Source: Tubulanus polymorphus (lineage: Eukaryota > Animalia > Nemertea). Taken from it: a stretch of DNA of 64,000 nucleotides. Positions 865 to 63,579 of the stretch are shown piece by piece; the first letter of the stretch is position 1; each line of letters opens with the position of its first letter. Both the position numbers and the translations under genes were made by a program. The notes below the pieces were generated by a model. That model saw nothing but the letters and a program-made list of their open reading frames with translations. It was not told the DNA's origin and did not search any database. The stretch is from NCBI RefSeq assembly GCF_964204645.1, contig NC_134032.1, positions 11,582,275 through 11,646,274 on the forward strand. The letters are read 5' to 3'.

Positions 865-1365
865 GTTTCGTGATCGGACCGGCGTGGCATCTGGGAATGG
901 ACGCTTACCGTCAGATCGGGAATGAGCGGAATTCGTCGCGGATGAAAACTGTAGGTCGCCGTAAGCGTCGAAAACCCGAGTGCAGTTTTTGTGGAAAGCG
1001 ATTTTTGAAATCGGGGGATTTGAATCGGCACGAGCGAATTCACACCGGCGAAAAACCGTTTCAATGTCCGACGTGCGGGCAACGTTTCAGTCGGAAATAC
1101 CACTGTGAACGGCACATGCAAGTGGTTCATTCCGATGAAAAACTATTCAAATGTCAGTTGCGACGAAAGGTTTGATTCTTCGATAAATTGAAACGACACG
1201 AGCGAATTCACACCGGCGAAATACCGTTTCAATGTCCGATGTGCGAGCAACGTTTCACGCAGATATCGAGCCGTAAAACGCACATTAAACGCTTTCACAC
1301 CAACGAAATCAGAAATCACAATGTCAACAGCACATGAAACGCGTTCATAACAAGTTCGGTTTTAA
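865..1365 (+). pseudogene. Variable terminal ZnF exon, frameshifted after finger 2 (stop 1175; further fingers out of frame)
   Basis: Acceptor gattctgatggctatttgcag|GT TTC GTG (phase 1); deletion in tgtcagttg near 1160; HERIHTGE continues in another frame. Confidence 0.75.
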
Positions 1366-1588
1366 ATTCTAGTTTTGATTAAGTAAATAAGTTTCATTTG
1401 GTTTCAAATTGAACTTTAAGTGTAATCATAGTAATGTACTTCTTATTTTTCTATCCAAAGATAATTCACTGTATGGTTTATGATGGAACTGAATACAGAA
1501 TCCGAGAGTTATGTCATATTTTCCAAGTTTGGCTCGACCAAGCCCGAACCAATCTTTAGCACGGCACAAAATATTTCACAGAAAAGCG

Positions 1589-1694
1589 GTATCCAGTTCC
1601 ACAGTTGTGAATTAGATAGAGTTAACTTTGAGTTGAAATTAATTCATTTTCAAACTCAGATGCAAATCTTAACTCGGAACTGTGGAGCTGGAGC
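1589..1694. mobile_element. PIF/Harbinger-like MITE, degenerate copy of the 108-bp family
   Basis: TIRs ccagttccacag / ctgtggagctgg; homologous to 22116-22223 and 46524-46631. Confidence 0.7.
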
Positions 1695-1734
1695 CTGCAC
1701 ATTAAGATGACAAGAAAGTTTGAATTGCTACTGG

Positions 1735-1910
1735 TTCCGTGTCAGTTTTGCGACGACGCGGCGTTTATTACTGCTGCAGATTGTAAACAACCCGAGCGAA
1801 TTCACACCGACGAAAAACCGTTTAAATGTCCGACGTGCGAGTTACGTTTTGGACAGAGATCAAACTGTAACTGCCACATAAAACGCGTTTATAACAAGCT
1901 AGATGCTTAG
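1735..1910 (+). pseudogene. Relic ZnF exon fragment
   Basis: CQFC..QPERIH and CPTC..HIKRVY with mutated His ligands; no acceptor found. Confidence 0.7.
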
Positions 1911-2120
1911 CGCTGTTTTGACCTAAATTCAGCAGAGCTGATGGGTTGGGGAAACGCCCATATTTCATAAATGGCTCTAGTCCTAGTTTTTATCGGATTT
2001 ACCTAAAACTTGGTACCAATGATCTGAGGGCTAGATCTAAAATACATCTTGATGTTCTATGTTAAACTTGTTTAGATAGAAAAGAAAATTGCTAACACTG
2101 TCCATGTTGTGACGATAAAA

Positions 2121-2287
2121 AGAGAATCCCAAACTGATATAACGAAAGATGAAGTTCGAAAAGTTGCCTTTAAGCTAAATAATGTTTTATTAATTCGACG
2201 TTTCGACATTAACCTTCGAATCAATGAATCATTAGCTTTATAAAAACTTTTCGGACTTCAATTTTCGTTATCACTGTGGGGTTCTCT
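2121..2287. repeat. Imperfect inverted repeat
   Basis: agagaatccc..gatataacgaaagatgaagttcgaaaagtt vs aacttttcggacttcaattttcgttatcactgtggggttctct. Confidence 0.6.
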
Positions 2288-2748
2288 ATCTATTTAAAAA
2301 AATTGCGTTTAGTATATAATGAAAGGAATGATTTCATAGTGGATGCGTTATATTACTTCTCGTGAGTCATTTGTTTATATGTGGGACTCGGATTCATGAT
2401 TCGAGAGTAAAATTGTATTTTCTTGAAAATTCACATGAGTAATGTTGCCGTATTTCAGTTTTGGACTCTCGAAAGTTTTTCCTTGTACAGCTTTTCTACG
2501 GGTAAAATTGACCGGGCGTTTCGTCGGTATCAATCTGTTCATTATCTTACTCGAGCGATGTACAAGACCTGTTTAATAAATAAGATTGAAAAAGAAGATT
2601 TTCTTTATCTGTTGTTTTTGTCGTTCCCCATCAGGAATACTGACGGTAACTGAATTTCTTCCTTTTTTGAACAGATCACGCATACCCGCTCTAATTTTGT
2701 AATCATTAAAATGAAAACTAAAATTCGGATTCTGATGGCTATTTGCAG

Positions 2749-60656: not shown

Positions 60657-60922
60657 CACAGTTCTGAATCGCACGGCGGTGTTCAGCGGTGGTGTGGCGC
60701 GGAGGCATCGAAACAGAGGTTTTTTCGTTTTGATTCGTAAATCGGCGCCCAGTTTTCTAAATCAATTATATCATTGGAAATGATCTTATTTCAACCCGGA
60801 ATTAGATCGTACTGGACTCGGTTTAAAAAAAAAATTTCCAACGGTTGAATGAAAATTTGTCGGTGGTGGTTGAAAAACTGAAATCATTTCTAATCCTCGG
60901 TTCTCATGGCTCTTCGTTGTAG

Positions 60923-61275
60923 GTGGCCTGGATTTCGGACATTGCGGTGATGCGTTGCCATGGGAACGCAGGATTACCGAACACGACGGAGCCGGGATGT
61001 TTATATCGCCCGACGACGAAATCCGACCGACGCTGCCGACGAGAACGAGCGCCTGGGCGTCGCGCGCGCGCGATAAGAAGTGTCGATTTTGCGACAAGTG
61101 TTTCCCGTCGCCGACGGAGACGCGGCGTCACGAGCGCGTGCACACCGGCGAACGTCCGTTTCGATGCCCGATGTGCGAGAAGTGTTTCAAACATAAGTAC
61201 GATCGCAAGAAACATCTTCGCGCCCTTCACAACTTCGATGAAAACGCGTGGGACAAAAGCTTAACTCTGATATAG
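60923..61275 (+). CDS. Variable terminal exon, 2 fingers
   Basis: ggttctcatggctcttcgttgtag|GT GGC, phase 1, in frame with ORF 60955. Confidence 0.9.
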
Positions 61276-61779
61276 TCTCAGGCAGGGGGCGTGTACGTCG
61301 TTCGGAACTGTGTTCGAAAAGTCCGAGATACATTTGAAATATTTCACGGTGGTTAAACATATCAGTTATCGGTTGCAGAATGGATAGTTTATAGAATAGA
61401 GGTTTCCGGGTCCTGATTTGACTATGTAGTGCCTTCTTCTGGCTGAATTTTGCAAAAATATGTCGCATTTCTATCTAAACTTTTTGTTTAGTGGTTATTT
61501 TCTTATTTTTTTATTAAAGAAAGACTCTCTAAAGAGCATTAATTAATTAATTTAAGGCAGTAATGATTGTTTTTTTGTTTTAGCTGCCTGTTTATGTAAA
61601 TCAAGGGCAACTTCTGAAAATTCGGGTTTCGTAATGCATTCGCTGCGAAAATCGAGATATCTCGAGTTTCACGGTTCAACCCCTGACAACCCTGCCTCCC
61701 TACCTCCACCCCCTACCCCATGTTTACTACTTACAATATTTAACTCTTACTGATATAAGTTTCCCTTGGCATTTTGCAG

Positions 61780-62120
61780 GTGAACTGAACCTAATGCCGA
61801 GGGAAATCTTCCAATACGACCTAAACTACCGACATTTGTTATACTCGGTCAACGCGAGCCTACCGTCGCCACCTGGCGGTAGTTATCATCATCACCATCA
61901 TCATCACCAGAAAGCGATGACTAGATGGCGCTCTTTGCCGTTGAAATACGACTGTCAGATATGTTTGAAAAAGTTTCGAACGCCGACGTTGTTGAAACGG
62001 CACATTCGCGTGCACACGGGCGAAAAGCCTCACCGATGTCAGGTGTGCGGGGAGGGCTTCGCCGAGCCGGCTAATTACAATCGGCACGTACGTAGAAAAC
62101 ATCCGCCATGGGGCAGTTAA
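61780..62120 (+). CDS. Variable terminal exon, poly-His plus 2 fingers
   Basis: attttgcag|GT GAA, phase 1, in frame with ORF 61794. Confidence 0.88.
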
Positions 62121-62648
62121 AATATCGGTGAGGAGGGATGCACAGTACTGTTCTCCATACGCTGTCTGCAGTTTTTTAAGAAATCTTAATTCAATTCTTA
62201 TGTTTATGATATGTCGTGGCTGCTGAAGTAGCGAGGCTTTCGATCCCTCGGAAAAAATACTGAAACTTAAGCTTAATTTAAGTGTCATTTTGCACATTAG
62301 CTCAATATATTTCAAAGCATTATCAGCATTGATAGAATATTGACATCCACGCCGGACGGGGCAGCAGATATTTCATAAGGGGTGGCTGTGAAAATGAAAG
62401 GGCTGGCCGACCTTCTAAAACCTGGAAAACATAGGAAAGGTTTGTGGAATTGTCAGGGGCAGTTGAAAACGTCAATGAATGCAGATTCCATCAGGGTATA
62501 TGGGAACAGGATATGAAAGGGTTAAAATTCAATAAGCATGCTATTTGAGACACAATCTGTAAATGGTCTATTATATTAATGCAGAATTTAAGAACACTCT
62601 TGATATTTTGTCAACTGTCAGTTATTTGTTGTTCGAGGCTGAAAAATG

Positions 62649-62842
62649 TGATACCTTGTTTCTCCTAATCGGCTGGGCCACTTTTCCATAGTGCAATAAA
62701 ATTTGTTATCAGTTCATTTCAATAGCTGCCAGGTGTTATGGTTAGATTGGTCATGATTCTTAAAAAGTTATGTACAGGATATATATGCAGCCAGCCGGGT
62801 CAACTTTTAAGCTCGGCAGAAATCATGAGAAACAAGGTATCA
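62649..62842. mobile_element. MITE family with tgataccttgtttctc TIRs (relatives near 3430, 6410-6580, 37785)
   Basis: tgataccttgtttctc / gagaaacaaggtatca. Confidence 0.7.
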
Positions 62843-63229
62843 ATTTTGTTATCCTTATATACGTATTATGAATACGTTTATGTTTATCTTAAAGAACAAA
62901 GTATAAATGAATAAAGTTATATTTAATAATCATAGAAATTATCGTTGTTGATTATTATTCTTTTTAATGCTCCGTAGACGGATTTAACGACGCAAAATGT
63001 TGTTTTTCATCGTAAATTCATGAATTTCAAGAGAACCACGGGATTGTGTGCGGGACTGGCCTGACCGGTGAGAACCATCAAGGGACTGACTGTATGACTA
63101 ATGCCTCGTAAACCAATTGAACACTGAAATATTTGCCTCAATTCTTGTTGCAACAATATTATCCCAGTTACCATGACTACACATGTAATGGACGAATTGT
63201 AATTGAGTTTTCCCATTACAATTTTGTAG

Positions 63230-63579
63230 GTGAAATCAAGTCCGGTGGCTCCACCTATTGGTCATCGTCTACATACGCGAATCGAGGAGGCTTTCGGTCG
63301 CCGCGTCAGAGTAACAGGGAATATCGCCCCGGCCAGGGGGGTGGTGGCGCTAGCGCAGCCGGAGCGGACGATCTGAGACGACATCAGTGCGAAATTTGCG
63401 ATAAACGATTCGCGTCGGCTTCGTTGTTGAAGATTCATCATCGCGTTCACACCGGCGAAAAACCGTACGTCTGCGCCGTCTGCCAGAAACGATTCACTCA
63501 AATCGGCAGCTTAAACGTTCACTTGAGAAAAGTGCACAACATACTGTACTGCGTGTCTGCGGACGGAGCTCGGAAATAG
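63230..63579 (+). CDS. Variable terminal exon, 2 fingers
   Basis: attttgtag|GT GAA, phase 1. Confidence 0.88.

Follow-up and report, generated by a model that had tools for sequence, protein, structure and literature searches.

A 64,000-nucleotide stretch of the genome of the ribbon worm Tubulanus polymorphus (hereafter the window) raises the question of whether one gene can furnish its protein with different DNA-binding ends, by joining a constant 5ʹ module to one of several alternative last exons that each encode C2H2 zinc fingers. Exact matches to RefSeq proteins place the window at C8:11582275-11646274 on the + strand of the 268-Mb assembly. For example, protein P0002 (LOC141909526, 610 amino acids) matches exactly at window positions 29396-29542, 29867-30592 and 37999-38955; it is one of two T. 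polymorphus RefSeq proteins that were retrieved with the largest non-finger frame of the window as query. A first-pass annotation of this DNA had proposed a constant exon joined to alternative 3ʹ zinc-finger exons, analogous to Drosophila lola and mod(mdg4). The locus does not consist of one constant region that feeds about 20 ends: it is a tandem array of paralogous genes, each of which has constant exons of its own. The explanation that we favour, with moderate confidence, is a Tubulanus-specific cluster of transcription-factor genes in which the second constant exon (exon B) is spliced to one of several alternative finger-bearing last exons, here termed cassettes.

The window carries six paralogous genes (units 1 to 6), all of which have an exon A and an exon B to themselves. 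It also includes the cassette-bearing end of a seventh gene, whose exon A lies approximately 18.5 kb upstream of the window. Exon A encodes 49 amino acids, starts with ATG, ends in a phase-1 donor and is in every unit directly upstream of an exon B, which encodes a disordered, Ser/Gln-rich region of 240-450 amino acids with basic patches and an invariant acidic end. Three of the eight exon B copies belong to unit 4. The constant exons are listed below, and the second coordinate of each exon B is the last base before its donor.

11121..11268, + strand: unit 1 exon A (tblastn with RefSeq exon A, 94% identity)
12004..13004, + strand: unit 1 exon B, pieces in several frames, likely a pseudogene; donor 13004
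19033..19180, + strand: unit 2 exon A (exact match to P0003 amino acids 1-49)
19470..20477, + strand: unit 2 exon B, donor 20477 (P0003 amino acids 50-385)
29396..29543, + strand: unit 3 exon A (P0002 amino acids 1-49, 100% identity)
29868..30590, + strand: unit 3 exon B, donor 30590 (exact match to P0002 amino acids 50-291)
41839..41986, + strand: unit 4 exon A (exact match to P0004/P0008)
42444..43181, + strand: unit 4 exon B, first copy (RefSeq mapping)
44110..44847, + strand: unit 4 exon B, second copy, donor 44847 (RefSeq mapping)
46027..46293, + strand: unit 4 exon B, third copy, partial (RefSeq mapping)
49365..49512, + strand: unit 5 exon A (P0006)
49890..51230, + strand: unit 5 exon B, internally duplicated; donor 51230 (P0006)
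56341..56488, + strand: unit 6 exon A (P0011)
56584..57771, + strand: unit 6 exon B, donor 57771 (RefSeq mapping)

These copies of exon A belong to a larger set. Genome-wide, 15 near-identical copies were located, all within 230 kb at C8:11.41-11.64 Mb, with six on the - strand and nine on the + strand in a head-to-head arrangement. A profile of the module compared with 1.84 billion representative proteins gave 16 matches, 16/16 from T. polymorphus, and the cluster of tandem paralogues is specific to this lineage. The wider cluster was sampled as alternate 10-kb pieces, in which the orientation of every finger frame agrees with that of exon A on the same side of the cluster and the best acceptor is in phase 1 for 49 of 68 finger frames. 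Unit 6 runs on beyond the window with at least seven further two-finger cassettes, for a total of at least 12, and the number of cassettes per gene ranges from one to at least 12.

The splice sites of these parts are mutually compatible. As the first-pass annotation had maintained, a phase-1 donor is common to the eight exon B ends, and its sequence (CAG/GTAGGTGT, with the slash marking the exon border) is identical at 8/8. Each of the 21 acceptors that the annotation had named carries YAG, and most are preceded by a conserved intron tail of approximately 30 nucleotides. The assertion that all of them are in phase 1 is accurate for 15 finger-bearing cassettes, in which the acceptor frame fits the phase-1 donor and ends, as had been predicted, in a stop codon of its own. 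However, the other six lead to frames that are fingerless or frameshifted (8047, 14313, 21167 and 26187) or to truncated cassettes (43612 and 45482). The claimed restriction of finger open reading frames (ORFs) to one strand was reproduced, with 22 stop-to-stop C2H2 finger frames on the + strand of the window and 0 on the - strand; a matrix derived from the acceptors likewise finds 21 sites on + and 2 on -. Pfam recognized C2H2 fingers (zf-H2C2_2/zf-C2H2; PF00096, PF13465) in 10/10 cassettes scanned, with E values down to 1.5e-40. The exons behind the 21 acceptors are as follows.

865..1175, + strand: cassette of the upstream gene, 2 fingers (acceptor-frame reading)
2749..3422, + strand: cassette of the upstream gene, 6 fingers (Pfam, acceptor-frame reading)
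4624..4928, + strand: cassette of the upstream gene, 2 fingers (acceptor-frame reading)
6039..6340, + strand: cassette of the upstream gene, 2 fingers (acceptor-frame reading)
8047..8619, + strand: broken, frameshifted cassette; acceptor frame fingerless, 4 fingers in another frame
14313..14856, + strand: unit 1 cassette, frameshift inside the first finger; 4 fingers follow in another frame
21167..21366, + strand: truncated cassette of unit 2, 66 codons long and lacking any complete finger
21535..21947, + strand: unit 2 cassette with 3 fingers; P0003 joins it to 20477
24287..24858, + strand: unit 2 cassette, 3 intact fingers and a degenerate first finger (Pfam)
26187..26380, + strand: unit 2 fingerless frame behind a good acceptor
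26507..26964, + strand: unit 2 cassette, 4 fingers
36351..37033, + strand: unit 3 cassette, 5 fingers, skipped by the RefSeq model (Pfam)
37997..38958, + strand: unit 3 cassette with 8 fingers; P0002 joins it to 30590
43612..43743, + strand: unit 4 truncated cassette serving as an internal phase 1-1 linker exon (P0008 amino acids 297-340)
45482..45601, + strand: unit 4 second linker exon, a truncated cassette (RefSeq mapping)
46835..47523, + strand: unit 4 terminal cassette, 6 fingers (Pfam, RefSeq mapping)
59267..59586, + strand: unit 6 cassette 1, 2 fingers
60340..60656, + strand: unit 6 cassette 2, 2 fingers, a recent duplicate of cassette 1
60923..61275, + strand: unit 6 cassette 3, 2 fingers, joined to 57771 in P0011
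61780..62120, + strand: unit 6 cassette 4 with 2 fingers; a run X2 contig links it to 57771
63230..63579, + strand: unit 6 cassette 5, 2 fingers

Mapping of the RefSeq proteins reveals that the introns between exons A and B, those between exon B and the cassettes, and those flanking the linker exons are all in phase 1, and modules can therefore be duplicated or skipped without a break in the frame. A phase-0 intron is also present in the C-terminus of unit 5, which is unrelated to the cassettes. The shared phases were inherited via duplication and do not represent some 20 independent events.

Under the favoured explanation, each gene supplies a constant 5ʹ module composed of the exon A domain and the disordered exon B, with the phase-1 donor at its end, and downstream of it a row of self-contained exons, each consisting of a phase-1 acceptor, a short linker, two to eight C2H2 fingers and its own stop. 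In any one mRNA, exon B would be joined to a single cassette as an alternative last exon, so that one gene could yield proteins with different DNA-binding ends. Because every intron is in phase 1, modules would also be free to duplicate, shuffle and die, which would account for the surplus copies of exon B and for the linker exons, as well as for the dead cassettes and the unrelated C-terminus of unit 5.

Evidence on which ends are used comes from RefSeq models and from contigs of four public sequencing runs over positions 57600-63599. In run X2, whose type is unrecorded, one contig contains a GT..AG joint from 57771 to 61780 that skips three cassettes, and the first 400 nucleotides of the intron after 57771 have zero depth. 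An origin of this joint from a retrocopy was considered and ruled out because the 61780 cassette occurs once in the assembly. Unit 6 thus splices past its nearest cassettes, and exon B is not confined to the adjacent exon in this gene. RefSeq models pass over nearer sequences as well, joining 20477 to 21535 across the acceptor at 21167 and 30590 to 37997 across both the ORF at 31400 and the cassette at 36351. Other models join 57771 to 60923 (P0011), and 51230 to several exons that encode a C-terminus unlike the cassettes. The four isoforms of unit 4 (X1-X4) proceed from the first exon B copy through the linker at 43612 to the second copy, whose donor at 44847 is paired either with the linker at 45482, followed by the third copy (isoforms X1-X3), or directly with 46835 (isoform X4). 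When annotation and reads are combined, two donors have two acceptors each, namely 57771 (60923 and 61780) and 44847 (45482 and 46835).

The use of alternative ends that the first-pass annotation had envisaged, by analogy with the Drosophila gene lola, is thereby upheld in part. Nearer cassettes are skipped (57771 to 61780, 30590 to 37997), but the reads give one junction from 57771 among those listed, and several cassettes are dead. Its expectation that junctions run from 57771 to several acceptors is similarly matched by 61780 in run X2 and 60923 in RefSeq, but by no second read joint among the joints listed. The use of several ends by one gene is thus partly supported, and the regular use of many ends by one gene would be an extension of this pattern.

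Several observations weigh against the favoured explanation. Among the joints listed, a single junction leaves donor 57771, in one run of unrecorded type; contigs of runs X3 and X4 are thin across 57600-63599 and include no joint from 57771, and a 2015 RNA run is empty over the same interval. RefSeq assigns one finger end each to units 2, 3 and 4, and its models P0011, P0012 and P0013 chain cassettes into long proteins. Moreover, several cassettes are plainly dead. The frequency of AATAAA-like hexamers behind cassette stops does not exceed that of the background, which at 1.7 per kb makes the comparison uninformative.

Two further features of the contigs were noted in the same interval. A contig of run X2 at 62321-63166 covers the 850 nucleotides after the 61780 cassette at a depth similar to that of the cassette, and is possibly a long 3ʹ untranslated region that stops just before the next acceptor. 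At 59680-59910, a short repeat region reaches contig depths of up to approximately 25,000 in runs X3 and X4, with many alternative joints of about 150 nucleotides, and is probably a dispersed or satellite repeat.

Of the competing explanations, the one that survives best, although we regard it as unlikely, holds that the cassettes are relics of gene birth and death, such that each gene uses one finger exon and the others are leftovers of duplication heading to decay. The six acceptors of 21 that open onto fingerless or truncated frames agree with this proposal, as do the frameshifted state of unit 1, the single finger end that RefSeq gives to units 3 and 4, and the dominance of one unit 6 cassette in run X2. 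Two additional acceptor-like sites, at 15302 and 34735, have lost their AG to GG and are followed by decayed finger frames.

15277..15304, + strand: dead acceptor motif in which AG is now GG; the frame that follows has decayed
34710..34737, + strand: dead acceptor motif, likewise GG for AG, followed by finger remnants broken by stops

However, the coincidence of AG loss with frame decay indicates that acceptor and frame live and die together, as would be expected of spliced exons. In addition, cassettes that occur in no model have not drifted freely. Pairs of related cassettes, including such cassettes, exhibit ratios of nonsynonymous to synonymous divergence (dN/dS) of 0.14-0.59 at synonymous divergences (dS) from 0.1 to above 1. 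Six cassettes that are absent from all models (865, 2749, 4624, 6039, 59267 and 60340) are open and have kept their fingers at dS 0.36-0.96, with dN/dS of 0.43-0.59. In a simulation that applied substitutions alone, a single cassette remained open under neutrality with a probability of 0.002-0.2 at the observed divergence, and both members of such a pair would seldom do so. These values support purifying selection on the cassettes that the models omit.

A more far-reaching proposal, to which we give somewhat less credence still, is that the whole cluster is a combinatorial generator in which any of the 15 modules can be joined to many of well over 100 finger ends across approximately 250 kb. 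Joining could occur in cis, by read-through or in trans, given that one donor, one acceptor type and one phase are employed throughout, and the exon A domain would serve as a common handle for binding partners. If true, the cluster would have converged, outside the arthropods and on a larger scale, on the scheme of lola and mod(mdg4).

It is improbable that the cassettes are instead spliced in series, as consecutive coding exons that use internal donors located before their stops to produce long multi-finger proteins. This is the structure of P0011 (LOC141910369, 1194 amino acids), which over 60923-63579 and L040:1-6500 chains the cassettes at 60923, 61780 and 63230 to later ones, and one of its internal junctions is canonical (C/GTAGAA, 62091 to 63230). 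However, GT or AG is missing from most of the internal junctions in P0011, and AG from one junction of P0003 (LOC141910368; 21911 to 24283); these junctions fall at equivalent points of two fingers, a placement typical of alignment or template-switch artefacts. The contigs of run X2 also disagree with the chain, since 61074-61806 crosses the donor that RefSeq supposes near 61189 and 61777-62243 crosses the stop of the 61780 cassette (62118-62120), both unspliced. In addition, the acceptors match the phase of the exon B donor, and every cassette retains its own stop and N-terminal linker. The RefSeq models of the cluster are mutually inconsistent, offering single ends for some genes and long non-canonical chains for others, and P0011 and P0003 probably need revision.

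Finally, cassettes might be copied into RNA through read-through or from separate promoters, and then be joined across genes or in trans to the exon B of any unit. Identical donors, similar acceptors and a single phase would keep any pairing in frame, low-level contigs cover DNA between cassettes, and mod(mdg4) provides a precedent (PMC13490949). We regard this proposal as no more credible than serial splicing. Intron sequence is not conserved between units past approximately 25 nucleotides after the donor, and every cassette has an exon B upstream of it on the same strand, so that cis-splicing suffices.

What, then, do the constant exons encode? Exon A is predicted to fold into three short helices (mean predicted local distance difference test score, or pLDDT, of 80). 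Pfam contains no family that matches exon A, any exon B frame or the RefSeq N-termini, even at E values up to 10. Thus, Pfam identifies no BTB/POZ domain in the constant exons, as the first-pass annotation had stated, and no KRAB, ZAD or SCAN effector domain at the N-terminus. No usable relative of exon A emerged from a PDB profile search, from the ESM Atlas, from Foldseek against the PDB or from the VIA wide search (best Z 3.8), and a word-based protein search for exon-A-like domains returned the query alone, which is a weak negative. Kinship with KRAB-A, considered on the basis of a similar hydrophobic pattern, was dropped because it has neither Pfam nor fold support.

Elsewhere in the T. 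polymorphus genome, approximately 20 diverged exon-A-like N-termini were detected, and the RefSeq proteins that carry them have C2H2 fingers or a homeodomain at the end. Exon A is therefore an N-terminal domain of transcription factors in this lineage. One of the diverged copies, at C7:16169802-16169930, heads the homeodomain protein P0017 (Pfam Homeodomain, E=8e-20), and the domain is consequently not exclusive to finger proteins. At its invariant end, exon B has Lys-x-Glu sites, then a hydrophobic patch and then a Ser/Asp/Glu run. We take this order to resemble a SUMO site followed by a phospho-dependent SUMO-interaction motif, and exon B may accordingly have a SUMO-related role.

Two other coding features of the window depart from the cassette plan.

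31400..32131, + strand: 7-finger ORF with its own ATG and without a cassette-type acceptor (Pfam)
51953..54030, + strand: unit 5 C-terminus, four exons, not of the cassette type (P0006 mapping)

The first had been singled out as exceptional in the first-pass annotation, correctly so. It is related to the 37997 cassette, to whose C-terminal region it is 47% identical, and may represent either an independent unit or a cassette whose 5ʹ portion has been lost. The same intron of unit 3 includes a strongly T-rich stretch at 32001-34000 (AT skew -0.20) and a long trinucleotide microsatellite at approximately 35400. The C-terminus of unit 5 has an acidic stretch, two C2H2-like motifs that stand alone, and an end with a weak resemblance to Myb (Pfam Myb, E=0.11); it looks like a captured foreign module.

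The swapping of finger ends on a constant body is so far known mainly from a few insect BTB genes, and our literature search found no such system described in nemerteans or other non-insects. If the favoured explanation is true, a ribbon worm possesses an independent version built on a previously undescribed N-terminal domain, and this mode of diversifying DNA binding arose more than once. The cluster would also offer a natural system for reading directly, exon by exon, how finger modules duplicate, shuffle and decay.

The closest known parallel is lola, a Drosophila BTB-zinc-finger gene with about 20 alternative 3ʹ exons, most of which encode C2H2 finger pairs. Both systems have constant 5ʹ exons with one donor and a same-strand row of 3ʹ finger exons with their own stops, and the set of at least 12 two-finger cassettes in unit 6 is particularly reminiscent of it. 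However, the nemertean genes have no BTB domain and instead place a novel 49-amino-acid helical domain and a disordered region in front, their constant module has been multiplied into 15 paralogous genes in a host that is not an arthropod, and their use of multiple isoforms is a proposal drawn from annotation and one read joint. The gene mod(mdg4) combines BTB with FLYWCH ends in more than 30 isoforms, all produced by trans-splicing (PMC13490949). It too has a common exon whose donor faces many alternative 3ʹ exons with the DNA-binding part, whereas the ends in T. polymorphus are C2H2 rather than FLYWCH and all its cassettes are on the same strand. In fruitless and broad, a BTB domain is followed by one of three or four alternative zinc-finger ends; these genes share the principle that alternative C-terminal finger pairs change the DNA target, but the number of ends in the present system reaches dozens and BTB is absent.

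Other parallels concern the organization of the cluster. The KRAB-ZNF genes of tetrapods and the ZAD-ZNF genes of insects also form lineage-specific tandem clusters that evolve by birth and death, with an N-terminal module on separate exons and matching intron phases that permit shuffling. They differ in having a single finger exon per gene, and KRAB, ZAD and SCAN are missing here. The multiplied constant module places the T. polymorphus cluster closer to KRAB- and ZAD-type clusters in that respect. Clustered protocadherin and UGT1A loci similarly splice self-contained variable exons to shared exons, but their variable exons are 5ʹ and have their own promoters, whereas those described here are 3ʹ terminal exons. 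Judged against these systems, the proposed swapping of 3ʹ finger ends would be a known device, and what appears to be new is the BTB-less front module together with the multiplication of the constant module into a cluster.

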